Below, one piece after another: positions 389 through 62,685 of a DNA stretch of 64,000 nt (position 1 is the stretch's first letter; each line of letters opens with the position of its first letter). A program made the translations under genes and the position numbers. Under the pieces are notes generated by a model. It saw only the letters and a program-made list of their open reading frames with translations. It searched no databases and was not told the origin of the DNA. Location: positions 3,253,751 to 3,317,750 of the forward strand of contig OZ037773.1 in NCBI GenBank assembly GCA_964035545.1. The letters run 5' to 3'. Source of the stretch: Bugula neritina. Taxonomy: Eukaryota; Animalia; Bryozoa.

Positions 389-501
389 TAGCAGTGAGTG
401 GCTACAAAATTCCTAGAGCCTACCAGGAATGCAGAGAGAAATGTGCAAAGAAAGGGAAGACAAAATCTTATCTCTATAAAGGGGCTTGTATATGCATCTG
501 A
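389..501 (+). CDS. Mature-peptide exon of a secreted 4-Cys CS-alpha-beta/defensin-like peptide (5' signal exon presumably upstream of the window)
   Basis: Acceptor acttcag|TA (phase 1), then (V)AVSGYKIPRAYQECREKCAKKGKTKSYLYKGACICI*. CxxxC-x14-CxC spacing is identical to the complete gene at 5572-6071; net charge about +7; AATAAA near 626. Confidence 0.75.
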
Positions 502-1591
502 CTGCATATATTATAGGTATATTATAGTGCTTTCACTTTACCAAACTTGTTATTGAATAGAAATGCACTACTTTTGTCATTATTGGGATTCTAATAGTTG
601 TTTTATGAATTTACATGTTAGTATAAATAAATTTGTATGTATATATTTTTATTTTTTCCACAATACAACAAATGATGCATTTAAAACCATTTGTGTTTTG
701 TTTCAAATACAACTTTATTATTATTTCAAAAGATTAGAAGTCATTGATGCGTATTTAGATTTGAGTTGAATTATGATTTTTTTTCTCAATAACTTCAAAT
801 AATTGGTCAATTCAGTGCAGTGTGCAGTGTGCAGATGCACTGTGCAATTTATTTTAATAAATTTCCCTAAAAGAAAAATATATTTGATATAAAAATTTAA
901 ACTTCATTTATATATATAGCTGCAGCTGTATGCAATTTTTAATCAGCAATTAAAAGCAGTCTAAAATATCACAACTTAAAAAGACAAAACGACATTTTCT
1001 TTTATTTAGCAGTTTAATCAGCACTTAACAAGTAATTGCATATTTATGCAAATACTATAAAAAAGTAAATCATGATTTGATATAATATTACTCTTAAATA
1101 CTGCTGTAGCGTACAAGTCTCGAAATAAAATGACACTTGTTCCATACACAGATAATGATAATTCCACATATATAGGGACAAAAGAGAACATATAACTTGT
1201 TGTGTATATATATAAGCAAGAGTTAATAAATTGGCAAAACAAGTATTTCTCTAATAAAATCTGCTGTATCATTACTACAACCCACAGGAGCTGAAGAAAG
1301 GTTTATTTAGTTTTTAGCTAACTCCCTATTAAATATTGAATAAAACAATCTGTAGCAACAAAGCCTGTGACTTTTCTACTATCATAACTTACAAGAAAGT
1401 TTTCAAAAGTTGTTTATATTATTTCCATTTATAAAATTGTACATATATTCATTGAGTATATATAACAATAAGATTGAACATAATATAATAATATATAGCC
1501 TACTGCATAATTTAGTAAACACACTATAAACACTTAATAATGTTGCTCAAATATTCTGACTATATTCTAGAAGGCCTTTTTATAGACTTAG

Positions 1592-1710
1592 TAGCAATGA
1601 CTCATGGCTACTAAATTCCTAAAGCATATATCTCAAATGCAAAGAGAAATACACTATAATATAACAAAGGGTCCTTATATAAAGGTATCTCTGTATATAT
1701 TTATCACTAC
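1592..1710 (+). pseudogene. Decayed tandem duplicate of the 389-501 peptide exon
   Basis: ag|TA GCA ATG ACT CAT GGC TAC TAA ATT CCT AAA GCA TAT aligns to ag|TA GCA GTG AGT GGC TAC AAA ATT CCT AGA GCC TAC. Premature TAA at 1612-1614, a frameshift before TGC AAA GAG AAA, and similar 3' flank (about 1.2 kb duplication period). Confidence 0.75.
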
Positions 1711-2932: not shown

Positions 2933-4300
2933 ATAATTAACATGAAAAATGAATAAAAAATAGACTTACTCTTACATATTACATATTTTTGTTTTGGATT
3001 TCCACTACAATATAACACAAAATATTAATGTTTTGAAGTATGCAATTATTTGTCCATTATAGATAGTCTCAAAGTTAGCACATGAAACATTAATAGCAGA
3101 CTAAAACAGTTTATGTTAATACATTTTTTTAAATTTTCAATCTGATGGTACAACAGCAATCTTTCTGTATTTTTGATAAGAGACTTATAAGAAAGTTAAT
3201 TAAATATTTTTCATTTTTATGTTTTGATTCTTAATTAAAATATTTGCTTAGAAATAAGATATCATGATTGATGTTTCCAAATTTTACATGTAATTTTATA
3301 CATTGCTAATTGGAATTATCTTCTTATTAGATACATGTGTTGTCTTTTTATACTGAATCCAGAGTTATCTTCTCATATGTTGAAGAAGCATAAAACAGGA
3401 ACGTCATGTCACAAGAATATACCAACCAAACTTTTTCTAGTCCTGTTCATTGAGCTGCATATTACTAAGAGAGTAAATATACTCTGTATCATCACATTAT
3501 TTAAGAGATGCACATGGGTAATTGGTCCAATCAAAAAGTTCTTGCTATACTTTATCAGCGCAATATCTTGATCAAAGGAACCATGACTAGCTTTGATACA
3601 ATTCTCTTGAAGCTACTACTATATCTCATGTTTTACCCCGTCCTCTTTACAAATATATCCATTATTTTATATTTCAATTTATTCTTATTTACTGAGATCG
3701 ATATAGCAAGCTTTTATAGCTCTTTCATGTTTAAAATATTTTTATTATAATATCTTTTTTGATGATTTCTGTTGTTCCAGCAAAACCACCTCTGCACCAA
3801 GAAACATCTGAGAATATTTCCATCTCAGCTCTCTACCTCCTGCCTGCTCTATATTGTTCTATAAAAAAATCCCATTTAAAAGAATTTGTCATTTCATTTC
3901 ACATAACGGAAAGGAAAAGAACTTATAAACTGAGTTGCTATAAATGTTAACTATATACATGTTTGTTTGCAATAGATTATAGTTACAAATATATCATCGC
4001 ACAAAAATGTATTTTATATATTGGTATTTTTTTGTTCTTATGCTGTAGGAGAAAAGTATGTATAATATATTTTAAAACTTCTTTCAAAAGCAGAAATTTT
4101 TAAACCTTTGAGAATTATTACTATATAATTATATTTTTATTATTTACTGCAAAGATTAAAATAACAATTGTTAATATTATATGAGGTTAAACTTACAGGC
4201 CAGCTTATAATACCAGATTGATTGAAACTGGTTTTGCTACTTATAAATTTTATGATAAATATAAGCAAATCTTCAATAAGTCAGTTTACTATTGTAAAAT

Positions 4301-4390
4301 AATTTTGCTCCCCCCCCCCCCCACTGGGATTCGAACCCGAGACCTCTGGCTTGCAAGCAAGTGTGCTAAACATTACACCATAGAGATCAC
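4301..4390 (-). mobile_element. tRNA-derived element family A (SINE-like head)
   Basis: Minus strand reads TGGTGTAATGTTTAGCACACTTGCTTGCAAGCCAGAGGTCTCGGGTTCGAATCCCAGTGGGG: A-box, TGC in the anticodon position, B-box GGTTCGAATCC. No acceptor stem. Related copies at 4550-4634, 12545-12580 and 54025-54089. Confidence 0.7.
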
Positions 4391-4549
4391 AGGGTAAACT
4401 CATCATTACAACCATGAATCCTATCATGAATATTATAAGTAGCAAAACATTTTCTATCAAGCTGGTAATATAAGCTGCATGCAGTCTGTAACTTATTCTG
4501 ATGATGTAGTGTTTTGCTAAAGAGACTGTAGAGTGGAGTTTTCCCTGCA

Positions 4550-4634
4550 GTCTCTGTGGTTTATATACTTGTTTACATGCCTGCTTGCAAGCATGAGGTT
4601 TTGAGTTTCGAATCCTAGTGAGAGAAAAGTTTTG
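4550..4634 (+). mobile_element. Degenerate family A tRNA-derived element, inverted relative to 4301-4390
   Basis: tgtggt...ctgcttgcaagcatgaggttttgagtttcgaatcctagtg matches the family A consensus. Confidence 0.55.
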
Positions 4635-5071
4635 CAGTACTGCTGGTACATATTTATACACTGTTTAATGTTGTCAAATTACAACTTGAACTTTTTAGCA
4701 GAACCAATGTTTTCTAATCTTGTAAATGTATTCAACATTAAATTTACACGTGCATTTTTATAAAAAGGGTAGAAAACTTTATTATACATTCAGTTATGCA
4801 TTTATTACTAATATATTTTTACAAATTTAATTATCCATTGCCAGCTAAAAAGAGCACAACTCCTTAATGCTACCAACAAATGTGAACAAATTAATTTTGC
4901 TAAAATTATTGGTGGCAATACTAAGAGTTATGCTCTTTTTTGTTCTGTTAAATTATCTGTATAATACTATCATTGAGTATTGTCTTAGCAGTATTTAAAA
5001 GTGATGTTAGTATCAAAGTGGCAGTTAATTATGCTAGTTATATATGCTGCAAGCCTATCAGTGCTAAATGA

Positions 5072-5180: not shown

Positions 5181-5571
5181 TTAACATTTTTATTCAAAGC
5201 TTCCCATTATTTTCCTATAAGAGAATTATAATTTGGATTCATATTTGCCTTATTTATCAAAACCACTCGAAAGTTGATATAACTTTCCTAAACTAACATG
5301 CTGAAAAATGTATAAAGTAAAGCTGATGTCTTTAACCACACGAATCACTTTTAATCATTTCATTATTAAACAAAGTAATTTTTGTATGAAAAAGCCAACA
5401 TTTTTAACTGCTTCACTGGTTTTATTGTGAAAAACATGACATTTGCATACACATATTATTTAATGGCATATCAATTTATATTAAATTGCTTTCAATTCCA
5501 CACAGTATTACAATATTGTGCAGCGTGCTATACCTAACAAGAGGTGAAGGTCACATTCATGCAGTAGGAAA

Positions 5572-6071
5572 CTATGACACCTTTAATTTCCCTAGACATG
5601 AACAGCGGTGGCCAGAAAGTTTATAACTAGCATATCCGTCTCTACGGCATCTGTTTCTGCAAAGGCTTCGTACACTAGGGCCTGTGGATGCTGTTAAAAA
5701 GTTCACAGAATATTCAAATTATGATTCAGCAACACTTTTGGCAAGTCTTGCATTGTATACAGACTATTTTGTACATTATATGTCCATCTTTGTTTCCTTA
5801 ACTCATAAACATGCAATGTCATCATTACATTTAGTATTGTTAACAGTTTGTGACAGGCTTTGTACAACATGCAATTGAAAACTTATAACATGACGATATA
5901 ATATACTGTCTATTTGATTTCTTAAACTAGTTATTAAATTTATATGATCTATTGAAAATATAAATCTGAATATAATAGACTCAGTCGCATTCATATAACA
6001 TGACATTATTTTAACTTACCCAGTGAACTCAAGGCCATCATGGTAATTAAAAGTAAAGTAAGAACTTTCAT
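5572..6071 (-). CDS. Secreted cationic 4-Cys CS-alpha-beta/defensin-like peptide precursor, 56 aa
   Basis: Exon 6071-6020 MKVLTLLLITMMALSSL, phase-1 intron (G|GTAAGT ... TTTTTAACAG|CA), exon 5690-5572. Product MKVLTLLLITMMALSSLASTGPSVRSLCRNRCRRDGYASYKLSGHRCSCLGKLKVS*. Signal peptide, CxxxC-x14-CxC, mature net charge about +8. Confidence 0.85.
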
Positions 6072-6268
6072 ATTTCATAGGTTCCTATAAAAATTACACC
6101 CAGTAAGTTCTCTTGCTTGCTGAAAACTTTGAATAATTATGTAGACAAAAAAGTACTCCTTTACATTTTTGTAGACCAAGTTGTTCTGTTAAATGAGTTT
6201 ACACTTATTTGTTCTACGTTTACAATATAGACAAGTACCATAGCTAGAAATATGCTAGCTAGACATTA

Positions 6269-6623
6269 ATAAAAGCTATTCAGCATTTATAAACTTATTT
6301 AACTATAACCCAATGTACGTACGTGTGCATGTACATATATGTGTATATATGTACAAATTGTACATACATGCATACGTACGTACATTGAGTTATAGTATAG
6401 ATATATACACACACACACACACCCACACACACACCCACACGCACACACACACATACACACACATACACACATACACACATACACACATACACACATACAC
6501 ACATACACACATACACACATACACACATACACACATACACACATACACACATACACATATATACACACACATATATACACACATATATTGGGTTATAGTT
6601 TAGCTATGCTGAATAGCTTTTAT
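6269..6623. repeat. Fold-back/MITE-like element enclosing a (CA)/(TACACACA) microsatellite, in the 5'-UTR intron of the peptide gene
   Basis: Inverted arms ataaaagctattcagcat (6269-6286 / 6606-6623) and aactataacccaat (6301-6314 / 6587-6600); extra internal hairpin 6301-6396. Confidence 0.7.
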
Positions 6624-6730
6624 ACTATACCATATCATATTTATATTATAAATTATATATATTTGTGTAACAAATATTATAAATGGAACTATTAATATAA
6701 GCCAATGAATGAAAAGGCATGTAAATCCTC

Positions 6731-6819
6731 ACCTTCTTTATAACTTGCCGCAGTTAATGCATGTACAGGGGCCTCTGTAGTGAATCAACGCCTCTGCAAA
6801 TATACGCTTCTTATATATA
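6731..6819 (-). promoter_or_regulatory. Putative TATA promoter and non-coding first exon of the 5572-6071 peptide gene
   Basis: Minus strand TATATAAG (6810-6817), Inr-like TTCACT about 30-35 nt downstream, donor AAG|GTGAGG near 6732, acceptor TTTTATAG just before the ATG exon (about 6085). Confidence 0.55.
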
Positions 6820-13278: not shown

Positions 13279-16200
13279 ATGGCTCCCACGAGTACTAACG
13301 CTGTCCTCACTGTGTTGACGTTGACATCCATCCTATCTTCTACGGTCCTAGCAGAGGGTGCAACAGGTTGGTACCTCTAATGATTATTGTCTATCATTTA
13401 GCCATTCATTACCTACAGCCTGTAAGTGAACTTCGTTTGACTACTGTTGTTTTTTGCTTGCTAGACTGTGTTTCAAAGTCTCTCTCGGGCAGTGAAGGCA
13501 ACATCACCCTGAATTACGATAAAGCAGACGAAAATGCAACATGCTACTTATTTCAGTGAGTTTCCTACTCTTTCTTCTAACTCAACAAAATTTATAATCT
13601 AGTTTTTATATTTATAGTAAACTGTATCAGCATTTATTGATTCGTTTTCAAGGTTATATGTTTTGTTGTTTTAGCATTGATAATAATCAATACAGGTACT
13701 TGTCTAGCTGGTACAGGTGCTTGTCTAGCTGGTACAGGTGCTTGTCTAGCTAGTACAAGTACTTGTCTAGCTGGAACAGGTGCTTGTCTAGCTGGTACAG
13801 GTGCTTGTCTAGCTGGAACAGGTACTTGTTTAGCTGGTACAGGTACTTGTTTAGCTGGTACAAGTGCCTGGCTAGTAGAACTTACATTGTGGCAAGCTGC
13901 TGGCTCATGCAGACAAAAAGTTTTCAAAATATTTTCATCAGATTTTCTATAGGTTAACAAACATAAACAATAAGGTAATAATTTGTAAAAAAACTACAGA
14001 TCTTCATTCAACTGAGATCAAGAAATTTCCTTAATATAATTAAGTTTATTTGGATTACTTTCTGGTTTATTCAAGGGGAGCAGTCATGGTCTAGGGGTAA
14101 AAGCAGTTGCTTAGTAAAAACATGTCATGGGTTTGAGCCCTGACAAAGGCTTTTGGTGATGTTAAAAAGAGCATATAGTCATAATTGCTCCTGTGCCTCA
14201 TCTGAATGAGTCCTTGGCCCAATTTACCAAAAATCCTTTTCACCAGGGGTTTCTCACGGGGATGGTAGCTATAAACTTGCGTGAGTGATTTTTTTATTCA
14301 AGTGTCTAGCAGAAGTTGTGTTGTAGTATGTCCTCAGTGAATTCCTTGCTATTTCTCTCCGTCCTGCCTGATCTTAGCAGCAGCAAAGTCTCTAGCATCA
14401 CAGTATACAACGTCAACTCTACTGGCGGTATCGCTGTCGTGTCTAATCGCACTTTCGAAGCTAGTACAGGTAGGTGGTTTCAAGTGTGTTCTTGTTACAT
14501 AATAACTTGTGACTCAGTTGGTTACAAACTTGCTTGTTCCTTTACGTACAGCATCGTTTGCTCTAATTAAATTTTAAAATGTTGACTGGAAGCACCTACT
14601 GTGTTGTAACTTGTGCCAAAAATTATGAATGGATTGCATACAAATTTGTATTTTTTCTTAGGTTTTGACTATATTAAATGCAGATTTTGAAAAAAATTAC
14701 TCATTTTGCAAACCTCGGCTAAGGCTGTTTCCCTGCCATAGCTTTTAGCAGTGTGTCTGCTGCTCTTTATGCAGAAAGTTATTGTGAAAGGTATTGAGGT
14801 TGGTTATAGTGGTGTAGGTGTTGTAATAGTTGTACACTTTAATTTCTTTCTCTCTCTCCCTCTCTCTCTCTCTCTCCGTTTCGAGTGACAGTAAAGACAA
14901 TGTTCTTTGTTCCAGTCGACCCGTACATGGTTGTTGGATTTGGCCGAGATGCAAACGAAACTGAGGAGGTCATCAGGGTTGAGGTGAGACTCAGTGAAAG
15001 CCTGGCTGACAATGCTACCGTTTTCATAGCAACCTATAATAACGAGAGTGAGTAACTTCTCTGTTTCTATGATATTAAAACTGAATACTGGTACTCCTAT
15101 ATTTATGGCATATTTTGATATTTGCATAGTTTATATCATACTGTAATAAAACATGTTATGATCTACATAGCAACATACATACTGACTATAGCAACCTGCA
15201 CTGTTTCCATAGCAACACATATACTGACTATAGCAACCTGCACTGTTTCCATAGCAGTACATAAACTGTTTATAGCAACCTGCACTGTTTCCATAGCAAC
15301 ATTTATCAACAGACATTTTGACACCTGCATTTAGTTAATGAATAAACAAGTCCGAAAAATAAATGCATTCTCTATTATATATTTTTCTCAGTGAAGGTAG
15401 TAATTTACTGCAAAAAGTAGCCAACTTTATAGTGAATGAATGAAGAAGCAATCCATATCGTAAAATAAATACATTAGCTGCTATGCAGACCTAAATAACT
15501 TTATTAAATGCTAAATATTGCACCTATAAGTCTAAAGTGTGAATTCTGGTACATATTTCAAGTCACCTGAGAATTGTTACCTCCGCGAAATCTTCTTTGA
15601 GACTTGTGTTACCTTCTTCTGAGTCCGATTGATAAGGTTGAAGTTGCTGTTAATGTCCAACAGATAAATTGATCTTGCAGCTACTAACTGCGATATTTTG
15701 TAAAGCTAGTCGAGTTCTATTGCCGTATTCACAGCCTGTAAGTTGGACTACCCAAGCGTGCCGTCCATGATTAAGAACCCTGACTACGAGATGGGAAGCA
15801 ACGCTAACATGACCTTCGTGTGTGAGCTTGCTGTCACCAAGATTAAGGATGCCTCGTCTGTCACCTCTTTTGTCTTCACTCAGTTCATGTTCAGTGAGCC
15901 GTCTTTTCTGAGAGTCAACACCACTCGATCTGGTATATAATACATTACACCCTGTATATAATATACTACACTCTGTATATAATACATTACACCCTGTATA
16001 TAATATACTACACTCTGTATATAATACATTACACCCTGTATATAATATACTACACTCTGTATATAATATATTACACTCTGTATATAATATATTACACTCT
16101 GTATATAATATACTACACTCTGTATATAATATATTACACTCTGTATATAATACATTACACCCTGTATATAATATATTACACTGTATATAATATATTACAC

Positions 16201-19200
16201 TCTGTATATAATACATTACACTCTGTATATAATATATTACACTCTGTATATAATATATTACACTCTGTATATAATATAATACGCTCTATATATAATATAT
16301 TACACTCTGTATATAATATATTACGCTCTATATATAATATATTACACTCTGTATATAATATATTACACTCTGTATATAATACATATGATTCTGAAAACCA
16401 TATAATCTGTTTGACAGACCAATACACTGGCTCTGAGCTGCCACCAGATGTCATTGCAAGACACGAACTTTTTCTGGAGATGCAGATCAGTTTACAGAGT
16501 TCTGACCAGTTCACTTTGTCCATGACGTCATCAACTAAAGGTGTGCTGCTTAATCTGTTGACAATGTATATAAATAGCAACGAAAAGTGTATATAAATAG
16601 AAATGATGGCGAGGTTTATAAAGGGAAAAGCTGAGTTTCAAGTCGAATTCTTATGCGTCTATTATCCTAGCTATCTGAAAATTTGGTACGAAATAAGATC
16701 AAATATATTATTTGTTTTTGTCAATAGTGATAATTCAGCTGTAGTGGTGGACTGAAGGATGTAGGGTTCCATTTGTGTGCAATTATGGTTGAACATAGTT
16801 TAACAATAAACGATCATATTGAATTGAAGAGTGTGGCTATAACTGATGATAGTTCCTTCCTAATCGTGAAGTTTTATTTTATGGATGGAGCACAAAAGTT
16901 TTATTTCAGTGAGTAGGTAGATGTTGCAACACCCAATTGCAATGTTCTATGAAGTTTGGTTTGAGTAAGTTGAAAAGACTCAGCTTTACAAATGTCCGCC
17001 CATTTCCCGTTTTCTTGTTGAGATGGGAACTCTGAAATAACTTTTTGGAGTAAAGAAAATGGAGCATGGTTTAAATAGAACGTAACTTAGAAAATAGTTC
17101 AAGTCTTTACAGCTTTAAGTTCAACTCCTTCTAATCTACCTTGTAGCACAATCATATTTCTAGTACTACAGTCTGTGTGCCTTTTGTATACCCCACAATA
17201 TTGGCTACCAATATGTTATATTTTATCATAGCTATAATTTGAAACCTGTTACCTCTTTTTCAGCTTGGAATTGTTTTAATGGATCCCATGTTCTATTAGT
17301 GTTCTGAAGAAACTGCTGTCAACTTTGCTTGCTATTTCACAACTTTCATCAACTCTCTCATTTTAGCCTAACATCTTATTTACCACATTAATATTGATTT
17401 TTCTCAGACAGAACACAGTGCTGCCTGCTCATGTTATTTTTGTTTGTTGATTTAGTACTAATTAGAATATAATGCTGCTGCCGTTCTTTATATAAGTGTG
17501 TTTATTCATGCCGTCAGCAGTCTACTTCTTTCATTGTGGGGTACACAATAGACACTTCTGTGTGTTATACTAAATACATACACATATTATACTCATGATC
17601 TGAGCAAGGTAAGTGCAGTAGTGGAGAAATTGGGAAAAGCCTCTGTTCTAGATCAGAAATATAGCATGAGAAGTTATGTTCTCGCGAGAATTTCAACCAA
17701 CGCCCCAAAGCAAAATTTAATAGTAAAATTAATGACCTTAGGTTATCTCAATTTCTCCAATGCTGCTCCTAAACTGGTTTAACTGGGTTCAGCATTGCAT
17801 GGTAACTGGTTGATATAATTATTTCTGCAGATTGCACCAAGTATGTGAGTGTGACGTCAGACGGGACAAATGTCACCAGCCCCAGTTATCCGTCTGCTTA
17901 CGACAACAACCTCTTCTGTAAACTCATGCTCATGTCTGCTGATAACAAGTATGTATTTTATAGCTGGTCTTCTTTAAATTGTAGTAGCCTAAGCACTCCA
18001 TATTTTCTTGAAAAATTGTGGTTTGCTTTGAAACTCCCTGCTAAATAACTTTTCCTCAACTTCTAATCTAAAACACAGACTATTTTGAATTTCTCTGTTA
18101 CTGTACTGGCTTCCCTCTGGATTGCTCTATAAGCAGCTCCTAGTTGGGGGTGATTTGGGTTCCAAATTCTAATTTATACCCCATACTCAACTCCAAACTT
18201 GAGAACTCAACTACTGCACCCAATCACCCCCCCCCCAACTCGTAGCTGCTCATGGAACAATTCTTCTCACTTCTCAGTCTTGTGTGTTGCCGAGTTAATG
18301 GTTCTTTCTGTAAATCTAATTACTGTGTTTTGATTATCTCGACATGTTTTTACAATTGTACTTTGCCTTATTTTTACTCTTTCTACTCTCTGCTGTCATC
18401 TAGCTCTTTGTGTGCCTTCCAGGCAGTAGTCAAAGTAGTAATGTCTACACTGTCAAGCTACGCTCACCAATATACTTGCAAATGTATAGTTTTGCATATT
18501 GCATTCATACAGTACTCAGTGTGCTCTTAGATAATAGATTTAATTTTGCTGATGCACGTGTCATTTTGTTGGGTATTCAGTAAATTTCAGACCTTGACAA
18601 TTAATTTAGAATTTTTAGTTCCTATAATATTGAAAAGAGCATCATATATATAAATTAATAAAATATAGTATGAAGAAATCAATGGATTATTCTATAAGCA
18701 GCCCTGAGTTAGGGGTGGCTGAGTGCAATAGTTAGGGGTTCTCCAGTTTAAAGTAGGGGTTTATTGAAAATCCCCACTCCAGCCTTTGTTACATTTATTT
18801 TACATTATGTTGTTTTGCACAGACCTCTTCAACTGACAGTCACCAAAATTGATTTGGCTAAAGATAATGACAAAGTAGAGGTTGTTGATGGGGGAGCTAG
18901 TAGAGCAAGTGGTAGAATCATAGCAACCCTGTCTGCTTTGGATAATTATAAAGACAAAGGTTTGTTTCCTCACATCTGAGACAGAGCTATTTGGTTAATA
19001 AATTAGTTACCATTCAAATCGCTTGGTTAAGAAATACTGACCAATCAACAAATCGGGTTGCAAGCATACAATCATGAATTTCTCTGATATATCCTTTATG
19101 AAACAACTTTATCAGACTGGAATTCTTTTTTGGATTTGTCAGGCTCCATGTTTAGTATTTCTGTTGTAAAGTTATACAGCCACATGATAATGCATGAATT

Positions 19201-38458: not shown

Positions 38459-40580
38459 ATGATGACTATGATGCCAGAATCGTTTTATGACATGGGCGTG
38501 GAGTTAACTAAGAAACTTACACAGGCCAAAGCTCAGGCCGAAAGCAGTCAAACCGACTGCCTAGTGCCTGTCACAGTTGCTGAGCAAGACTATGGCTATT
38601 GCAGTGATGAGTTCTATTTCACCGATAGCAAATCTGACCAATCAGCTGACACTTCCGGTAAGTTCTAAGCATCTTAGCATTGTTAGAATGGTTTTTTAAT
38701 TTAGATGAAATATAAATTGACAATACAGAAAATTTACTAATGCAATACATCTATATAGGTGTCACTTAGTTGCTTCTTACAAAATATAATTTGTTGTATA
38801 ATATTGTAATGTATTGAGTCATGCTAATGCAATGCTTCCAGCACCCAGGGGCTCAATTATTGCATCACCCTTGCATCAGTGTCTACTGTGAGTAAGGAAC
38901 TACTAGTGAGGCTAGAATAAACATTATGCAGTCACATGTTATCAAGCCACGTAGTTACATGCCACACTAGTGAGTCTAACTTTCGCTTTCAACAATTTTT
39001 GTGATGTCACTTCCAGGAACTGCCACGCCCCTCACATTAGAAGATGTGGACATGCTTGCTGCTGTTGAGTCCTGGCAGAATAATCTTGCGGACACCGCTA
39101 GTCTCTCAGGCCCCACTTCTAATATGACTACTGCTGCCGCTGCCGAACTGGAGCGAGCTTGCAGCGCATACACAGATCTCTCTGACGCTTCATCCGACGA
39201 AGGTGCCAGCGACTTGCCTGAAATCCTGCGCCGCTCTGTGGTACGTTCTTTTCTGTCTGTCGGGTGACGTGTTGTCAGTCATTTTTCTTTATTTAGACTT
39301 GGGTCATTTTACTTAATTTAATGCACTATATACGTGAAAAAACATCACGCGCACGCACACCAAATTTACTAAAAATTTAGGACAAAACATAGGAAATCGA
39401 GTAAAATTTGAAAAAAAAACCTTGCTTATTCAGCTGTATTTGTTAATATTTTATCAGTTTGATGCAAGAAACTATATATATTAGTTGTTAAACAGTGAAA
39501 AATAGTTAAACACTAGAGGTGTGTAGTGTGTACTAATTTAAGTAAAATGACCCACTTGCATTTTTATATTCCTCAAGGTAGTAGGGATAGTAGTATAGTA
39601 ACTACAGCTCCACCTCTCTTACAGAAGGGAATAGCTAGTCTAATATATGAGTATAGTAATTACATCTCCCTCTCTCTTACAGAAGGGAATAGCTAGCTAG
39701 TCTGATATAGTAGTGTAGTGATTACATCTCCCTCTCTCTTACAGAAGGGGATGACTCCTGAAGAGAAACGCATGAGAAGAAGGGAGTTGAACAGAAGAGC
39801 TGCATTGAGATCCAGACAAAAGAAGAAGTTGTCTTCTTCCGAACAGCTGCAGGTTGGTATTTCAGCCTCATAATTCAGTGTTTACAGTTCCACTCACTGC
39901 CATTCTTATATAGTACCATGTATATTTTATATACTGTAGGAACATGCCTCCCTCTCCTAGTAATATAAAGTTAATGGTAGAGGAATATATACATGTTCAG
40001 GTTGTAGAAATTCTATGCGCGTTGTTTTAGCTTTACACGTGAAATACGCAGTATTTACTGTCAATATATTCCTTCAATAAGGTGACACCAACTGCTTCAA
40101 GTATTTTTCAACTAATGCTTTTCAGCTTGTCTTGTATCATTTAGGGCAGCATATTTTCCGTTTGTTTCCATATTTGAGTCACTGGGTGATTGAGAAAGCA
40201 GAATGGAGTTGCAAATTATAGAGATTGTTTGTCACTCTGTCGATTACATGAACTGGTTTATATTCTTGTGCTTCTACTCCTAGTAATATGTGATTCGTGT
40301 TTGACAGGAAGAAGTAAGGCTGGTCAAGCGAAATGCAGAGTTGCGAGTTGAGTTGAAGAAACTGGAAGAAGCTAAGTGGGAGTTGTATGCTCTTATAAAG
40401 AACCACTTCAAGGGCTGCCCATCAAATAATAATAATAATAATATTATTGTTAACAAGAAGCCGACTGTGCCTGTCCATCAGCAAGTGCCTGCTGTGCATC
40501 ATCAAGCTGTGACTCAACAAGCACCTGCTCACCCACGTCATGGTGGCAGCTTTCAGGGCCAGTTTCTAGCGTTTGATTGA
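38459..40580 (+). CDS. bZIP transcription factor of the ATF3/JDP2/BATF (Fos-related) group, about 267 aa
   Basis: Exons 38459-38657, 39017-39240, 39745-39852, 40308-40580. Basic region EEKRMRRRELNRRAALRSRQKKK, zipper LVKRNAELRVELKKLEEAKWELYALIKNH followed by FKGC (H-x3-C as in ATF3/Fos). Confidence 0.88.
39593..39750 (+). repeat. About 60-bp tandem repeat x3 containing the bZIP-exon splice acceptor
   Basis: ctctcttacag|aaggg with AG ending at 39624, 39682 and 39744. Confidence 0.9.
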
Positions 40581-42465
40581 AGAGATGGGCGATAAAAGTT
40601 GACTAATATAGGATCGATATCGTTAATGCATATCGAGAAGGATTGCTGCACCCCACACTAATCATAGGAACAATATTTGTTGAATAACTGCAGCGTGCAT
40701 TCACAATATTAAAGGGGAGAGTGTCGGGGCTCTCATATATAGATCAGAATTTTTTGGTATGGCACCCAGTCTAGGCTATGGAGCTGTATTGGGCTGAACA
40801 GGAGTTATATGAGTGGCATGTGCCGTTTTATTATTACTAATTATAACATTTAGTAATTTTCTTTCATAATATTACAGTTTGGTGTGTATCACAATTGGTT
40901 TAATATATATTATACAATATGTATGCTGCACACCTGTTATGTCATAATGTTATGGGAATAAGGTTGGAATAGGTCAGGGTTGGGTGATAAGGCCTGTTTT
41001 AAAGAAATATGAAACAAAAATTATTATAGTATGTTTTATAACAATTTTATGTTATAAGCCATTTTTATTATTCTGTTACTCTATATAGTCTGATATACTT
41101 TTTTAATATGGGTTTCTATAGAAAATTGTGTCCAGTTTTATATGATTATCGATCCTACATGTTTGTTTTGAGACTAACACCTTATATTATCCATCAAGTC
41201 TGGACTTGTTTATGATCTGATACCACTTAATGTATCAAATATACTGCATTTGTTTTATGAACCTTGTCTTCTTGTGTTATTAAATAAACACAGGGTGTAA
41301 CTGTAGTACTATAGTCAACTGGTGACAGTTTTAGAAAACTAAGGTATTTCAGTGAGCTACTAACTTGGGCCACTGCTATTGAATAAACATGACGGCTATA
41401 AATCACTCTTCAAAGAGTTTAGGTTTTACCAACTTGTTAAAAAGAAACTTTATCAGCATATACTAGAAAAGGTATAGTGCATAGACTTCCTGCATATTAT
41501 AATACACAACTATTAGCACAGAAAGCAAAACTAAGCTGGTATGTCTGGGGTTTATAGTTCACACCTGTATTCTGCTGTATGTATTGCATATGCTATATTT
41601 ACAATTCCACTTCGAATTAGAATCTTAATAAATAATAATAAACTAATTATTGTACACAACTTGCTTGTAATTTCGCTAATTACCAATGATAGTGGGTGAA
41701 ATGAGAACACATAGATATGCATAAATGTAATCTAGGAGCAGCTGTGATCTGCAGCACAGATTTCGAGGAAATAAATGAAATCCGCTCAACAAACTTTTCA
41801 TCATTTTTTGCATCAATAGAATTTAATGTTTATATATAAATAACATCAAGTGATGACTATATTTCTTAAGAATTAGTGTTGATTGATTTTGATCGAGGGG
41901 GCTACTCTTTACATAACGAATGATTTAAGCAACTGTTCCAACTTACCACTGTCAGTACATTGTAATGATGAATGGTGGCATATACCCGGCAAGGTTTTGA
42001 TAATATGGACATCAAAAAGTTGCTAAGACATTAACATTAGGCCAAAGCACCTTATTGGTCAATTATTAGGTAGGACCACCCATCAATAATTACAAATAAT
42101 CAACAATACACTTCTATACAAAAGGTATTTTTGGGCTGCGTTACACAACACATAGTTATTATAGTAGAGAACTATAAGTCTCATAATATGGCTGCGCTCA
42201 AACACACCAGCCAATAAATTGTTATCATGTTTTGTGTAGGAATTGAGGCTACATGACTTTATGTACAGATGAATGATATTTAGCAGGGAATTAGTTGGGA
42301 AATGAATATGAAATACCTTGAGCTGAGGTAATCAGAGGCTTAATAGCTGCGTTCTGTAGCAGTCGGCAGGGAGCCACTGCTTGCTCGGAGATGTAATTCA
42401 ATAAGGTTTTCCATTATTGCAAATGTATTACAAGGTTACATGCAATGTAATACTATGATATAATA

Positions 42466-50793
<8,328 letters not shown>

Positions 50794-53374: not shown

Positions 53375-56300
53375 ATGGGCGTAGATTACTATAAAGGTCA
53401 GAAGTATGAAAAGCTGAAGAAAGAGTTATTAAAATCTGGTCAATTATTTACAGACCCAGAATTTTTACCCAATCAAAAGTCACTATTCTATAGCAGAACA
53501 GAAACAGAAGTTATATGGAAAAGACCAACGGTACGTTCTTATGCATGTTTAAGATACTCTAACAGAGGGATGCTTTATGATTATGTTGTCGTAGAGGAAC
53601 AGTTCACATTTGGTAGGGTTGGAAAACTCCAACGTGTTTAGCCTGCTGTAGGTAAATGTAATTTATGTATGCACTGTAGGAGTTATGCAATGTGCCCAAA
53701 CTAGTAGTGGGCGGAGCCTCGTGTGAAGACCTGATAGAGGGGGAGTACGGAAATCGATGGTTTATAACAGCATGCTCTAATCTAGCCAATCACAAAGCTC
53801 TATTCAATAAGGTGCTGTCAGCTTCGCTTTTAATGTTATGTTGGAAAGTGTTGACTAATAGTATGGAACTGTAAGAGCCTAAACCTGGTGGCAGAACATT
53901 TCAATATCCTTTGACTTTAATGTATTTGAATTTTTAATAGTTTGTAGTTTTAACAAAATTATTCAGTGGTTTTTTTTTTCAAAGTAACATGGTGTAGTTT
54001 GACAAAACAGTTACTTATATAAAATAATTTTGCCCCCACTGGGATTCAAGCCCGAGGTCTCGGCTTGAATCCCAGTGGGGGCAAAATTACACCGCTGGGT
54101 AAGCTCAGCACTGCAATCTAAACTGTCAATAGCAGTAATATTTGAAGTTTTGCTGTGATGTCCAGCTCACCCGTTGCAGTTCTAATTTACATACTCTATG
54201 CAAGTTATTTTAGAGTAAGTAAGAGTTTTGTTGCTATGGTTACTTCAGGTTATTCCCAGCAGCTTAGCGCAAGAATACAATAACACCGGCGCTCACGCTG
54301 GGATATTCAAGTTCCAGTTCTGGTTGTTTGGAACGTGGACAGAGGTGGTGGTGGATGACCTTCTTCCCACTAAGCACGGCAAACTCGTTTACTGTCACTC
54401 TAAGTCTAAGAATGAGTTTTGGAGTGCCCTGCTTGAAAAGGCTTATGCCAAGTTAGTCTAATAAATGCTAGCTTTGAAAAGGATTGTTTTTTTAACTCAA
54501 TATATTTGCTATGGTATATGTTAGTCTAATCTGTTACAGCTCACACCAGTGTCTGTACCTGTGCTGAGGGTCTAAAATGATAACTTTATATTCAAATGTT
54601 TTATTGAATATAAACCAATGTTTGTGGATTATTTGGTGTTGGATTTATATTTAGATTGTCCACTGTTTTATACAAGAAAGAAAATCTGTTCGAATATTAT
54701 CAATATTACTATATTATTACTTTATCTGTTGAATTGTCTTCACTTGATTTTTGTAAAAGTGATTTCTGAAAAATTAGTTGTGTTCAAAACTTGTATTAGT
54801 TGTTTTAGTTTTAACTTATTTTTTTTAGTAAAAATCTTTAATATTGTGTTGCGGTTGACATTGTTTTGTTGTTTGCAGACTATTTGGAGATTATGAGTCA
54901 CTGAAAGAAGGGCTGGCTGTCAACGCACTTGTTGACTTTACGGGAGGGGTGCCAGAAAGATTCGACGTTGCAACAATAGACCAGGAAAATGAGACTACGT
55001 GCAAGTTGGTATTCAGCCAATTAGAAGAAGCTCTGGCCAATAGTGCTTTGATAGTTGCTGAGGTCAAGGTGAGGCTAAGGTCACAATATCTTATTGATGA
55101 TTGGCTGATTTATTTTGGAAAATTTGTCAAACAAAACCCTAATCTATCGGTGTAAAACTTCGGATATAATTTGTTTTATCTGCGTTTCCTTCAACAATAC
55201 TGAAATACGAAAATTGTCTTATAGAAGGTCATTAACAAATATAGCAGTTATTAAGCATGCACATAAATCATATAAATAATAATATCCAATGTTTTCCTTT
55301 AGAATGCTAATGCCTCAGAACTAGCATCGGAAGAAGAAGCTATATCGAGTGGTGCCATTGATGTCCCTGAAGGAACTGATGTATTAGTGTTAAACTCGTC
55401 TCCCCCAGCCACCCAATCAGGTACACTGAGTTATTAACATTTATGTGACAAATGCTCCGTTCATATCTCACGGCTCCATTTCTCGCGAAATTCCATAGGT
55501 CACGAGATGAAATTGGACCTCTGTTTTGTGGCTTATGTATGTGTGTATGGGGACGAAATGGTCGAAATTTGTTTAATTCAGGAGTTAAATCTGGTATTCC
55601 ACTATGTCGTTGATTGAGGTTTCAGGACCCGCAGCTGAGTGAGATACAAAAGGAGCATTGTATTACGTTATCTATTCTTTGTGTAGACTTTGCTTGCAGC
55701 ATGACAAGTTATATAATAAAGCAACAAAGTTTTAAACAGTCAGCTAAGAAACTAGGCTATCCAACTTGTATATCTGTTGCTATGTAGCAGTGTGTGTATT
55801 ATTATTTACTTCAATCAAAACCTGCTAAATATTAGCTATCATTTTACAATTGATTATTTTAGTGGATGTTTGCATATAAAATGCAATCAATTCAATCACT
55901 TTTCATATACAACAATACTTGGCAAACTAAATCAATATGGTCTCACTTCAACTTGTTCATATCCATATATTTTGTGTAGCATGTTCTGTAAATAATGATG
56001 ATTTACTGCTGTATTTACTTTAAAAGATTACTTTAATTTTGTGACTCTAATTACTTGCTCTTTGAAATGTTGGTTTCTAAGTTTACCTGACTGAAAATAT
56101 TGTTAATATGATGATTTAGTAACTTCGCCAGCAAATGTTGGCAGGTAACTCCTTTCCATAATTTCGATTATGTTTTTTAATTTTGAATCGACAGAAAATG
56201 TTCATAGTTATGATTAGTTCAACTTTTCAATAAATATTTTGCAATAAAAAAATTTGTGAATTTTTTCAATATTTAGGAGGTTCAGATGCTATTCGAGCTC

Positions 56301-59300
56301 CAAAAACAGGCTACTTCAGGGACAACTCCATAGTGAGAGACAGCTTTATGACTGATGGTGGTTTACTCGTGGACCATGGCTATAACCTTCGAGAGGTCAA
56401 GAACATTCAAATCAGGAAAGGCGAGTCGTACCGAATGGTGAGACTTCAAACACCGTGGCAGACGGGACAGTGGATGGGTCGCTGGTCGAATGTGTAGGTT
56501 TGCTAGTTTCAGTTTGTTAGTTTCAAGTTGGGAGGAGTTTGCTAATTTTAGTTTAGAACCCGTTTGCTAGTTTCAGTTTAGAACTCGTTTGCTAGTTTCA
56601 GTTTAGAGCTGGTTTGCTAGTTTCAGTTTAGAACTCGTTTGCTAGTTTCAGTTTAGAGCTGGTTTGCTAGTTTCAGTTTAGAACTCGTTTGCTAGTTTCA
56701 GTTTAGAGCTGGTTTGCTAGTTTCAGTTTAGAACTCGTTTGCTAGTTTCAGTTTAGAGCTGGTTTGCTAGTTTCAGTTTAGAACTCGTTTGCTAGTTTCA
56801 GTTTAGAACTCGTTTGTTAGTTTTAGTTTGGGAGGAGTTTGCTAATTTTAGTTTAAAACTGGCTTGCTAGTTTCAGTTTAGAACTCGTTTGCTAGTTTCA
56901 GTTTAGAGCGTATTTCTCTTGCCTAAGGGATAGAATCACATCACGTACATATAAGTATTGAAAATACAATAATTTCATATTGTCAAATTTAAAACTCACC
57001 TAAGCTACATAGCATAAAGCTGTGAGCATTAGAAAAAAGTTTACTTTTAGTAAAGAGCCAGTAATATCTTTTTGCAATGTTCAAAAGTTTTCAGATGTTT
57101 GAAATTGTCGTTGAATTACTTTCAATGGCATAAGAAGATATTTCTTACGTTCAGTTTGTTTTTTGGAGTCCTGTAAGCATAGTTATTATGCAGTAGTGGG
57201 CCAACTACTGTACAGTAATTATGTACAATATATTTTAACGTTGGAAAAATACATTGTGTGCGTATTTTTATGATAATATTTCAGTTTTATTATGTTGACC
57301 ATTTCAAATGATGCATACTCAGCTAGGTACGTCCGTTGTTGTTTACCGCGGCCATTGTTTCTGTTGTACAGGTCACAGGAAATGAAAAGTATGACGGTTC
57401 AAGAAAGAAATAAACTGGGACTGAAGTTTGAGAATGAGTCTGATTTCTGGATGTTGCTCAGTGATTTCTTAGCTAATTTTACACACATGGATGTTTGTCA
57501 CTTTTTCAAGACATCAATGTTTACCTTGAAGAGATCGTGGACTGAGTCAGCTCTTACAGGTACATGAGTAATCAAAAGCAGACGACATCTTTACGACATT
57601 ATTTCACCTCACCCTAGATTATTTAACATATCGCATAAAAAGACACATTGAAATTTTAATTCACATTCCAATTCATGCTGTATTAGCTTTTCAAATCTGA
57701 AAATATTGAAATTATTTAATGAATGTTCAACAGGATTATTGTGTTAGTTTATGCATCTTATTACAAACTCGTCTCGCTCGCCAACAGAATCTTCTGGGTG
57801 TCACTTTAAAACCCCTTAAAGTACTGCTGAAAAGGTTTTGGGGCAGACTTGTGTGTAGCATCAGAAGTTGTCTGCCCTTATAATCAAACAAACTTCTCCC
57901 ATACACAAACTAGAAGCCATGAACTGGAACTATGAAAACTGATTCATTACAGCCAATACATTGAATTCTGAAAACAAATAGTTTGAGATCTCAAAAGTTA
58001 TCTCTCAAAACGTTTAAACTTTCCCTCAATGTTACATAATACTGTCATGGTTATGTTTAGGTGAATGGATAAACTCTCTCCATGATAACAGGTCCGGAGG
58101 AAACCTCAGCCACCCGACATTTTTTAATAATCCTCAGGTATGAGCTTTGCTACGTTTTGTGATCGTATTTGACTATATATTTGAATGAATTTTTATTTCG
58201 CAAGGCTTCATGTTTAAAAACACAGGAAGCTATTATCTATATTAAGATATACTTATGTTAGACTATATTCCAGACTGGGTTCTAGATCATGCAAAGGTGT
58301 AGAAGGCTGTTATTTTTTTTAATTATAGACAAATTATTTTGTTAAGTTTTTTTTACAAAAGATTAAAGAATTGTGGGAATATTTATGCTTGTCCTAAAAT
58401 ATTGTATATTTACTAGCTGCATGCAAGCCTGCATTGCTTAGCAGTGCATCAACATTTTTATAGCCTCAAATTATGATAAAAGTTCAAAACTCTGTTCAGT
58501 GTGGTATAATCAACAGCGAGTTATAGTATATTATAGTACAGTAGTCAAGATAAGGTCAAGCTAAGGTCACACTGTAACTAATAGCATTAAGTACATGATT
58601 TGTTGCAGTACATGTTTGACATGACAGTATCTTCCAACTCTGTGAACTATCCACTAATGGTTAGTCTGGAGCAGAATGACAGAACACTGGTCAGAAGGGG
58701 TGAACGAGGATCCAAAAACAGCTCAATTGGATTCACTATTATGAAGGTAGCTTAAGGGTCCACACTTAGGCAGCTCCATGAAAGATTGAAGTTTTAAAAA
58801 AACTAATGGTTTCTGAACACAGCACAGTCTTTTCTCGGAGACTATGACCCTATTGTTTTTTTAAACCGATTGGCTGTGCAGTGTAGAACATGCTTCTTTT
58901 AATGCCCAATTGTAAATGGGTTTTCAGTAGTGCATATTTTAGTAGGCATTCAAAAATTTACTTAGGTACTGTGAATATGTTATAGGTATGGGTTACTATA
59001 GGTGTGCTTTATATATAGGATGTAGGCTTAAATGAAGTAAAATGATAAAAGTGTGTCATACAATCTAGTAAATTAATTAGATAATAAAGAAAATCAAACC
59101 GAACGATGCTATTTATATACACTTGCGTCTTGCATGCTTTACACATGCCTTATAGTTTTTTCTTGGGAAATCTATTTTTGTATGAATCATACTGTCAATT
59201 TTAATTTTAATGTATATTTCTTTAAACTACTCATTAAAAAGCTTTTAATCTAAGATTATATAAATATAAAAATTTTATTATGTAATGATAGAAATAAAGT

Positions 59301-61690: not shown

Positions 61691-62685
61691 ACTTCAGATG
61701 CAATTCATGGGTGTCCAAGATTTCCCAGTCTATAAAATTATTTTCGCTTTAAAGTGGGTCATCAAAAATTTATTGTTTTCTATACTTGTTCATTGATTCA
61801 GCTATTGTCTATAATAAAACATAAAATGATGGTATTTTAAGCTAGGACAATAAACTTTTGATGACTTTTTTACTGGATGTAATAATATTCATGTTTATAA
61901 TCACACTTCTTTTATGCTTGTCCAAACAAGAGTTCTGCTCAACTAATAAATATTACAAAATCTCGCATAAAAATAATTGTACTATAAAAATATTTTGTCA
62001 ACTTTTAAATCATTGTTTTCAATTTTGTACTGCGAGAGTAAAATTTTAAGGGGAGATTTTAGCCAAATATATTTCTTTTACTGGTTTATTATATATAACA
62101 ATATGTTTTTATGCTTTGTGTGATATTTTATTTTTTGCTGATATTTATTGGAATATAATGATTTATACTTGATAATTTAAGAATTATGCTATAAACCAGT
62201 CTAATATCGACATGCCACTGGCTCACTGCGTATGCTGCAGCATCGTAATAATTTAATATAATCTGCGTCTAAACTCTAACTCATAGCGACACCTCAAATA
62301 CGTGCATATAGGAAGGATTTGGCTGCACGGGTTGAGCTTTTCTCCGAGTCCACTCGGTGCCATGCTAGGTCTTTTTTTCAAGTAGGCTATAGTAATATTT
62401 TATTTTAAAAATTTTTTAACGTTAGTAGATGTATTTAAACTTGATTAAAATTATAACTCTGATTGAAAAATTCTATGTTTGTTACTTTGATTGAATGTAC
62501 TTTTTGGTGCATCACTTTTGGTTTCTTGTAATTGGGCGGGGAAACGTGTTTCAGCCATTTTAGTTGCTTACAAATTTTGCCGATTATCGATCGGACGATG
62601 AAATTGAATAGAGCTGCACTAACTCCAGCCCTATACCTATATTAATAATTGTATTTCACTCAGATTGGTCAAGTAGCCTAAGAAT

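Follow-up and report, generated by a model that had tools for sequence, protein, structure and literature searches.

The window (the whole 64,000-nucleotide stretch of Bugula neritina DNA that was analyzed) probably contains, on the minus strand at 5572-6084 and possibly out to about 6781, a functional gene whose coding sequence is split over at least two exons and whose product is a secreted peptide of about 4 kDa. We read this peptide as a lineage-restricted, defensin-like effector with two disulfides. We refer to the gene as gene B and to its paralog in the same window as paralog A.

A sequence-only reading of this DNA had proposed a three-exon gene for a peptide with four cysteines, and every sequence string that it listed for this gene is where it was placed, on the minus strand. 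Its signal-peptide exon, its mature-peptide exon, and the phase-1 GT-AG intron that separates them are all borne out by conservation in a relative. The remaining exon, which is noncoding, is less secure and is discussed below.

Exon 2 (6020-6084, minus strand) begins with 13 nt of 5' UTR, continues with the 17 codons of a signal peptide, and closes on base one of a codon that the next intron splits. The start codon (ATG, 6071-6069) opens a 17-residue hydrophobic leader, MKVLTLLLITMMALSSL, with hydrophobic residues at 12 of its 17 positions; the signal peptide would probably be removed after ...SSLA. (An out-of-frame upstream ATG at 6076-6078, also on the minus strand, is not conserved, as the relative's contigs have ATC instead.) The donor site of exon 2 is TGG/GTAAGT, in phase 1, with its GT at 6019-6018. 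Intron 2 (5691-6019, minus strand, 329 nt) runs in phase 1 from GTAAGT to TTTTTAACAG, and the acceptor of exon 3, TTTTTAACAG/C, has its AG at 5692-5691. The coding part of exon 3 (5572-5690, minus strand) encodes the mature peptide, with the cysteine pattern C-x3-C-x14-C-x-C and a GKLKVS tail, and ends with the stop codon TAG at 5574-5572. Our searches and structure models took the two exons of the 56-residue precursor (exons 2 and 3) one at a time. The 39-residue query for exon 3 (5575-5691, minus strand) starts with the last base of the intron, which gives the same alanine codon (GCA) as the spliced junction does.

The relative is known from three contigs of a closely related organism (L001-L003), which we reached via a predicted protein (P0001). 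Their source is probably a Bugula-type bryozoan; metagenomes of B. neritina are rich in short host contigs (PMC5041132). The contigs are syntenic with the window from 6340 to 138, at 82-87% identity (the relative as a whole is about 87% identical), and they conserve the ATG at 6071, both splice sites of intron 2, the reading frame, the stop codon, and the AATAAA of gene B. Between the window and the relative, there are differences at 2 of 52 positions in exon 2 (two Thr-to-Ala changes in the relative), at 3 of 119 positions in exon 3, and at 36 of 326 positions (11%) in intron 2, which also has 4 gap columns (in the coordinates of the relative). Taken with paralog A, gene B shows the pattern of a spliced coding gene: its splice sites are conserved, its exons change more slowly than its intron, and synonymous changes are in excess.

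Downstream of the stop codon, the 3' UTR of gene B (5405-5571, minus strand, with an approximate end) includes AATAAA at 5426-5421. L001-L003 conserve this signal together with the sequence around it, and the same block shows 70-75% identity to the 3' region of paralog A. In the two genes, this shared poly(A)-signal block lies about equally far from the stop codon, as would be expected if the 3' UTR were contiguous and about 150-170 nt long, and this counts against two extra donor sites that had been suggested from the sequence. One of these, TAG/GTATAG in the 3' UTR of gene B, is present (5528-5536, minus strand) but is not conserved: L001 and L003 have TAA/GTATAA, and in L002 the site lies within a 50-nt deletion. 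The other, TAG/GTAT after the stop codon of paralog A, is present at 514-520 but is deleted in the ortholog of paralog A.

At the other end of gene B, a TATA box, an initiator, and a 49-nt noncoding exon 1 form a putative 5' end that is plausible but unproven. The putative core promoter is a TATA-like octamer, TATATAAG (6810-6817, minus strand), whose first T precedes the candidate +1 A by 36 nt. Motifs of this class occur at background frequency: the 64-kb window has 20 instances of TATAWAAG, versus 17.3 expected by chance, and a second copy of the octamer lies inside intron 1 (6617-6624). The initiator-like TTCACT is at 6784-6779, and TCACTAC matches the initiator consensus YYANWYY at 6 of 7 positions. 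Putative exon 1 (6733-6781, minus strand) extends from the initiator-like TCA (with the A at 6781) to the candidate donor AAG/GTGAGG (GT at 6732-6731), and it holds a two-codon upstream ORF (ATG CAT TAA). Putative intron 1 (6085-6732, minus strand) is of the GT..AG type and includes a palindromic (TG)n microsatellite that has inverted repeats on its flanks. Its acceptor, TTTTTATAG/G (AG at 6086-6085), is kept in L001-L003, as is the 3' part of the intron (6085-6340). The sequence-only reading had proposed that gene B is TATA-driven and inducible or tissue-specific, in contrast to neighbors with CpG-type promoters. The nearest CpG-rich patches are more than 30 kb from gene B (39051-39400 and 42451-42750).

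We found no contig from the relative that covers exon 1, and a 61-residue translation of the upstream region gave no relative either. (One contig, L020, was considered as the relative's exon 1 locus and rejected: it was the best of 50 chance matches to an 18-nt pattern for the exon 1 donor, and alignment showed that it is not homologous.) A search of Rfam at gathering thresholds gave a weak tRNA-like match alone. The sub-threshold "miRNA" matches that appeared with E-value thresholds are due to the palindromic microsatellite in intron 1.

Alternatively, gene B might have just two exons, with its start shortly upstream of exon 2, within what we call intron 1. The motifs at 6817-6731 would then be chance occurrences in AT-rich DNA. 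This is a genuine possibility, if a rather doubtful one. It would account for the background frequency of TATAWAAG and the imperfect initiator, and the ATG-CAT-TAA mini-ORF would no longer sit in the 5' UTR. Also, conservation is about 92% over the 130 nt that precede exon 2, versus about 89% for intron 2, which would suit a proximal promoter. But we have several pieces of evidence against a start at this position. First, an acceptor that is perfect, rich in pyrimidines, and conserved, TAATTTTTATAG/G, lies 13 nt 5' of the ATG. Second, the consensus donor AGGTRAG is rare (21 per 128 kb, counting both strands of the window), yet one such donor lies on the correct strand, 77 nt past the TATA octamer and less than 750 nt from the ATG. 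Third, exon 2 has no TATA-like element upstream of it at a distance that could work.

We turn to the peptide that gene B would release. The cysteine spacing 3/14/1 (C-x3-C-x14-C-x-C) is found in both paralogs and in both species, and in both paralogs the signal peptide is followed by a phase-1 intron. Both peptides are basic, with a net charge of +8 for B and +7 for A. The mature-peptide exon encodes four cysteines in all, which is too few for the three or more disulfides that essentially all described animal CSαβ peptides have. AlphaFold predicts a helix and a β-hairpin for B (H7-17, E20-26, and E29-35, with a pLDDT of 82.1), and for A it predicts H9-21, E26-29, and E32-35 (pLDDT of 80.8). 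Both models were built from a four-row alignment, and they may largely reflect the cysteine pattern. When the predicted structures were compared to the PDB with Foldseek, the top matches were almost all CSαβ proteins (TM of 0.5-0.66), of which none was significant (best E of 0.27). These matches include BmBKTx1 (rmsd of 0.7 Å over 25 columns and TM of 0.65/0.74), insect defensin A (TM of 0.66/0.61), cobatoxin-1, micasin, a variant of an Anopheles defensin, drosomycin, and plant defensins. At the sequence level, neither Pfam (with E up to 10) nor NCBIfam gave a family match for the peptide, and searches of PDB sequences, whether by single sequence or by profile, gave chance matches to LapB alone.

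If the models are correct, then the α-helix with C-x3-C would pack on the β-hairpin, and C-x-C would be on the last strand. This fold would be the cysteine-stabilized α/β core of cis-defensins and short scorpion toxins, held by the two core disulfides alone. By analogy to cationic defensins, the released peptide may be a host-defense effector, most likely one that acts on microbial envelopes. The term "effector" was already used in the sequence-only reading, and it seems reasonable for a cationic peptide with a predicted CSαβ fold. As for antimicrobial activity, this is something we purely infer, and a basic CSαβ peptide could just as well bind ion channels.

Indeed, the peptide might not be antimicrobial at all. 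It could be an ion-channel ligand, a deterrent toxin, or a signaling peptide, possibly amidated as ...CSCL via the G-K. Its size and basicity would fit such a role, and many short K+-channel toxins (cobatoxin, tamapin, BmBKTx1, scyllatoxin, and kaliotoxin) are among the closest matches to the predicted fold. But defensins have the same fold and charge, no channel-binding dyad has been demonstrated, and overall we view such a role as unlikely. Amidation had been suggested on the grounds that the peptide has a C-terminal G-K. This is mistaken: the peptide ends with ...CSCL-GKLKVS, so the G-K is internal, four residues before the C-terminus. Also, amidation calls for a glycine followed by a dibasic site or by a terminal basic residue, and here the glycine is followed by a single lysine and then by leucine; G-K-L is not a canonical site for a convertase, either. 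AlphaFold places the G-K within the last β-strand of B. On the other side, the relative keeps every residue of the GKLKVS tail, with one synonymous change in its codons, and paralog A ends exactly where this tail starts. The end of paralog A is the one point in favor of amidation, for which the case is weak.

A quite different view of the locus arises from intron 2 of the relative. In L001-L003, this intron (330 nt) is fully open and in frame with the exons; none of 20000 shuffled sequences was open, and the other five frames hold 8-27 stops. The gene was called on the relative's contigs as a single unspliced protein of 166 residues (P0001) that reads through the intron. The open frame and the many stops in the other five frames are in keeping with this call, but we consider it very improbable, for several reasons. 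In the window, reading on from the ATG leads to a stop after just four intron codons, and three indels shift the frame relative to that of the relative. Substitutions within the intron are spread evenly over the codon positions (14/10/12), and its pN/pS is 0.74, versus 0.16 in exon 3. The consensus splice sites are conserved. The 110 residues that the intron would encode have no homolog in our searches, and the intron of paralog A, which is at the same site as intron 2 of gene B, is not open. (An LGKLK repeat, with one copy where exon 2 meets intron 2 and the other closing exon 3, is due to chance: its local alignment score is 17, versus 16.8 ± 2.4 for shuffled sequences.)

The spliced gene is also consistent with what we see in paralog A. 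The sequence-only reading had placed a paralog of the four-cysteine gene at 389-501, and its cysteine spacing and intron phase support this. The mature-peptide exon of paralog A (389-501, plus strand) agrees with gene B in both of these features, and its signal exon is outside the window. The two genes are arranged tail to tail, and their products are 30% identical, in a gapless alignment that runs through the identical cysteine spacing. The ortholog of paralog A is at 3744-3634 (minus strand) of L001. It differs from paralog A by 8 synonymous and 2 non-synonymous changes, both conservative (pN/pS of 0.063, Fisher p of 3e-5). For exon 3 of gene B, the pN/pS of 0.16 is based on three substitutions alone (p of 0.14), and for exon 3 of A and B combined, pN/pS is 0.085 (p of 2e-5). 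These codon substitution patterns indicate that the paralogs are under purifying selection. The window also holds a pseudogene fragment, a decayed A-type copy of exon 3 (1586-1650, plus strand), which shares 75.8% identity with 382-442 across 66 nt (E of 9e-5). This copy has an in-frame TAA, and its second cysteine codon has been replaced. It was not recovered by the family profile and was identified by DNA comparison instead.

Neither a profile search of a library of 1.84 billion proteins nor a word-index search found a transcript, an annotated protein, or the spliced 56-residue precursor of gene B. (The same protein sources call ORFs as short as 53 residues.) A word-index search with exon 3 (40 residues, 5575-5694, minus strand) gave no match, and of ten ORFs from the window that were looked up by exact sequence, the collection contained none. 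Two profile matches, P0002 and P0003, were rejected as spurious: they are long tandem-repeat proteins without the cysteine motif, and their scores are summed over 5-6 weak stretches. The lack of any transcript or annotation in these collections might suggest that the locus is a chance pair of ORFs or a dead pseudogene, but this is hardly credible, given that both paralogs appear to be under purifying selection, that the start codon, splice sites, stop codon, and poly(A) signal are all conserved, and that a truly dead member of the family, the copy at 1586-1650, is there for contrast.

Several known systems resemble the peptide of gene B in part. [quoted passage not shown] The bryozoan peptide shares C-x3-C and C-x-C with cis-defensins and other CSαβ peptides (such as insect defensin A, PDB:1ICA; an Anopheles defensin; micasin, PDB:2LR5; plectasin; and mussel mytilin, PDB:2EEM). 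It is likewise small, cationic, and secreted, and it has a predicted helix and β-hairpin. Unlike them, it lacks the cysteines at the N-terminus and in the first β-strand that a third disulfide would need. Also, its sequence similarity to them is undetectable and the structural matches are not significant. The short scorpion α-KTx toxins (cobatoxin-1, PDB:1PJV; BmBKTx1, PDB:1R1G; and tamapin) are basic, are of similar length (30-38 residues), and give the best rmsd and TM values. Their precursors are also organized as in gene B, with the signal peptide followed directly by the mature peptide and an intron at the junction. But these toxins are products of a venom gland, are held by three disulfides, and block channels through a dyad that has been proven. 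Bryozoans are not known to have a venom apparatus.

The nasonins of Nasonia vitripennis form a multigene family with a phase-1 intron straight after the signal peptide, no propeptide, and a short N-terminal loop (PMC2853521). All of these features are shared by the bryozoan peptide, and nasonin-1 (PDB:2KOZ) is among its structural matches. In contrast to the bryozoan peptide, nasonins have three disulfides and belong to an insect lineage, and there is no sequence similarity between the two. AdDLP, from the myxobacterium Anaeromyxobacter dehalogenans, has the cysteine-stabilized-helix motif alone, with four cysteines in the pattern C-x3-C...C-x-C (PMC5116183). It is the only defensin-like peptide with just these four cysteines that we found described, and we liken the two by description. 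Judging by the number and spacing of its cysteines, the bryozoan peptide would, like AdDLP, have exactly two core disulfides. AdDLP differs in being bacterial and in lacking an intron, and its activity has been reported against Plasmodium only. Our profile search of 1.84 billion proteins, which included bacterial proteins, found no relative of the bryozoan peptide. Finally, the sole defensin-type peptide that we found for bryozoans is a big defensin reported in Flustra foliacea, from a transcriptome (PMC7203481). It is likewise a cationic host-defense peptide, but it belongs to the trans-defensins, folds differently, and has six cysteines as well as a hydrophobic domain at its N-terminus, and it is unrelated to the peptide of gene B.

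A bolder reading, which we offer as speculation and think is probably wrong in at least some part, is that bugulids have lineage-restricted "minimal" cis-defensins with two disulfides, and that gene B yields both a short peptide and a long pro-form that retains the intron. The phase-1 intron of gene B would then be translatable in frame, now in the relative and until recently in the window. Under this reading, the peptides might serve in the policing of symbionts and not only in the killing of pathogens. The Bugula neritina complex has been studied for its vertically transmitted defensive symbiont, which produces bryostatins, and cationic secreted peptides are candidates for the control of this symbiosis.

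Bryozoan immune effectors are almost unknown, and the absence of gene B from large protein collections as an annotated protein shows how short, fast-evolving effector genes escape annotation. Elsewhere, we found the two-disulfide state described only for the myxobacterial peptide, which was proposed to be the ancestor of the superfamily. If our reading of gene B is correct, then it would add a cis-defensin-like family to the Bryozoa, and it would provide an animal case of a core with two disulfides, a state that some have argued is ancestral or minimal for the fold. This would bear on the evolution of defensins and on the number of disulfides that the scaffold requires.

The four-cysteine peptide genes B (minus strand) and A (plus strand) are a real, previously unannotated gene pair, and the coding model of gene B is confirmed. 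All the strings that the sequence-only reading had named for gene B are in place on the minus strand. Exon 2 follows a pyrimidine-rich acceptor (AG at 6086-6085) that sits 13 nt before the start ATG at 6071, which opens a 17-residue hydrophobic leader upon translation. (An out-of-frame ATG lies 7 nt 5' of this start codon.) Intron 2 runs from the donor TGG/GTAAGT (GT at 6019-6018) to the acceptor TTTTTAACAG (AG at 5692-5691), and exon 3, in phase 1, translates to the stop TAG at 5574-5572. In the window, the unspliced frame stops after four intron codons, so exon 3 can be reached from the signal peptide only by splicing. Paralogue A has the same intron phase and C-x3-C-x14-C-x-C spacing in its mature-peptide exon (389-501, plus strand), and the two peptides align without gaps across the cysteine region at about 30% identity. 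In a six-frame scan of the window, A and B were the only genuine loci with this motif.

We then searched for relatives, in every case with single exons of the peptide genes. Searches of Pfam, NCBIfam, and PDB sequences and a word-index protein search with the peptide gave no match. When 1.84 billion representative proteins were scored with a profile built from the two exon-3 peptides, one true match emerged: P0001, an open reading frame of 166 residues (E = 5.7e-16). The two other matches were rejected as repeat proteins that lack the cysteine motif. P0001, a gene called in prokaryote style, runs through exon 2, intron 2 without splicing, and exon 3. Three short contigs carry it: L001 (Logan SRR4020083), and L002 and L003 from JGI metagenomes. 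The names of the JGI scaffolds begin with AY690838, the accession in GenBank of the mitochondrial genome of Bugula neritina. Short host contigs dominate B. neritina metagenomes (PMC5041132), and B. neritina comprises several cryptic species (PMC11480708). L001 is collinear with 6340-138 of the window at 82-87% identity, except for two indels of about 1 kb. We infer that these contigs come from a sibling of the window's bugulid bryozoan.

The comparison with this relative supports both genes. The relative keeps the ATG at 6071 (the upstream ATG reads ATC there), the exon-2 acceptor, the donor and acceptor of intron 2, the stop codon, and an AATAAA at 5426-5421. In exon 2, 2 of 52 bases differ, and they change two Thr residues of the signal peptide to Ala. 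In exon 3, 3 of 119 bases differ, which amount to one Asp-to-Tyr codon (two bases) and one synonymous change (pN/pS 0.16). In intron 2, 36 of 326 bases differ, in addition to indels. Paralogue A gives a much stronger signal: eight of its ten substitutions in 108 nt are synonymous and the other two are conservative (Ala-to-Val and Ile-to-Leu), for a pN/pS of 0.063 (Fisher p = 3e-5). These patterns indicate that both are real coding genes under purifying selection. The pS of the paralogue A exon (389-501, plus strand, versus L001 3744-3634) is 0.37, roughly fourfold the 7-10% divergence of the intron and 3' UTR that flank it; this would reflect either constraint on the flanks or unusually fast synonymous turnover.

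In the relative, intron 2 (330 nt; L001 337-666, corresponding to 5691-6019 on the minus strand) stays fully open in the frame of both exons. Of 20,000 shuffles, not one was open, and the other five frames of the intron hold 8-27 stops. In the window, three frameshifting indels break the same path, although its 104 aligned codons are free of stops. Substitutions are even across codon positions and look neutral (pN/pS 0.74), and a search with the 110 intron-encoded residues found no homologue. Paralogue A has an intron at the same site, which implies that the intron position is old, and that intron is not open. The content of gene B's intron 2 resembles coding sequence that is optional or has recently decayed.

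Of the proposed three-exon gene, the coding exons stand on conservation and purifying selection, and the 5' end is putative. The putative promoter and exon 1 comprise a TATA-like octamer TATATAAG (6817-6810), an Inr-like TTCACT (6784-6779), and a candidate donor AAG/GTGAGG (GT at 6732-6731), all on the minus strand. The consensus donor AGGTRAG is rare (21 in the window on both strands), and one lies 77 nt 3' of the TATA octamer, on the right strand and upstream of the conserved acceptor, which favors exon 1. The Inr candidate fits YYANWYY at 6 of 7 positions. TATAWAAG occurs 20 times in the window versus 17.3 expected, with a second copy within intron 1, and the proposed leader holds a two-codon upstream ORF. 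The main rival is a two-exon gene with a proximal transcription start, and we consider the chances of the three-exon model to be roughly even. In the relative, L001, L002, and L003 all break off within the intron-1 microsatellite and so do not cover exon 1; two further searches did not recover the orthologous region. This microsatellite, a lengthy (TG)n/(TATG)n palindrome (6269-6623), has inverted repeats on its flanks (6623-6555 versus 6269-6352) and a further palindrome at its center (6302-6396), and sub-threshold Rfam "miRNA" matches arise from it.

The 3' end appears simple. The suggested extra donor (5536-5528) reads TAA/GTATAA in two of the relative's contigs and falls within a 50-nt deletion in the third, and in the orthologue of paralogue A a deletion removes the similar TAG/GTAT-like string 3' of the stop codon. 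Neither extra donor is supported. A and B share a poly(A)-signal block at similar distances from their stop codons, which indicates an uninterrupted 3' UTR of about 150-170 nt. This block of about 120 nt (624-745, plus strand; 5462-5343, minus strand) is 70-75% identical between the otherwise very diverged paralogues, and its conservation across the two species is about 93-95%. The block is a candidate for a conserved regulatory element in the 3' UTR.

The window is eukaryotic DNA, AT-rich (33.5% G+C) and CpG-depleted (observed/expected 0.47), with abundant microsatellites, and the CpG-rich patches nearest to gene B are over 30 kb away. Neighbors on the plus strand include a multi-exon rhodopsin-type receptor (42466-42792, 49844-50146), a calpain (53375-61700; one exon matches Pfam Peptidase_C2 and the last exons are C2-like by eye), and a gene at 62686-63658 with an N-terminus that is SAP-like by eye only and, after it, an exon made of TEAP-type repeats. 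Two minisatellites (13634-13960 and 15650-16580, with 24-nt and 21-nt units) give spurious long ORFs on both strands. The segments missing from L001 are 3869-4810 and 1882-2996. The former contains a tRNA-like element (4316-4387, minus strand; Rfam tRNA, 29.8 bits; no ARAGORN call) and is probably a SINE-type insertion.

What might the peptides do? Each exon-3 product has a mass of about 4 kDa and contains four cysteines, and the net charges are +8 (B) and +7 (A). AlphaFold models, which rest on a four-row alignment, give both one topology: a C-x3-C helix and then a β-hairpin, with C-x-C on the last strand (pLDDT 82 for B and 81 for A). The top Foldseek matches in the PDB are almost only cysteine-stabilized α/β (CSαβ) peptides (TM-scores of 0.5-0.66, best rmsd 0.7 Å over 25 columns), none statistically significant at this length. 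They include scorpion K+-channel toxins, mytilin, nasonin-1, and defensins from insects, fungi, and plants. Cis-defensins are defined by two disulfides (PMC7203481), exactly the pair that the model implies. Similarly, nasonins are reported to have a phase-1 intron directly after the signal peptide (PMC2853521), as in the bryozoan gene. However, described cis-defensins have at least six cysteines and the bryozoan peptide has four, and the likeness is one of predicted fold without a sequence match. The only four-cysteine case in the literature searched is the myxobacterial AdDLP (PMC5116183). The peptide probably works like a cis-defensin, as a stripped-down variant.

A role as an ion-channel ligand or signaling peptide is possible. 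The idea of C-terminal amidation at G-K has one point in its favor (paralogue A ends where the conserved GKLKVS tail of B starts), but the peptide ends in ...CSCL-GKLKVS, so that G-K is internal rather than terminal, G-K-L is a non-canonical site, and the AlphaFold model places G-K within the last strand.

A decayed A-type mature-peptide exon lies at 1586-1650 (plus strand) and matches 382-442 at 75.8% identity across 66 nt. It carries a TAA in frame, and its codon for the second cysteine is replaced, which shows birth-and-death turnover in this family. The gene pair most likely encodes a two-disulfide, defensin-like effector of the bryozoan. A host-defense effector is the predicted role that best suits a secreted, strongly cationic, disulfide-stabilized mini-protein whose tandem gene family is small, diverges rapidly, and has a decayed member nearby.
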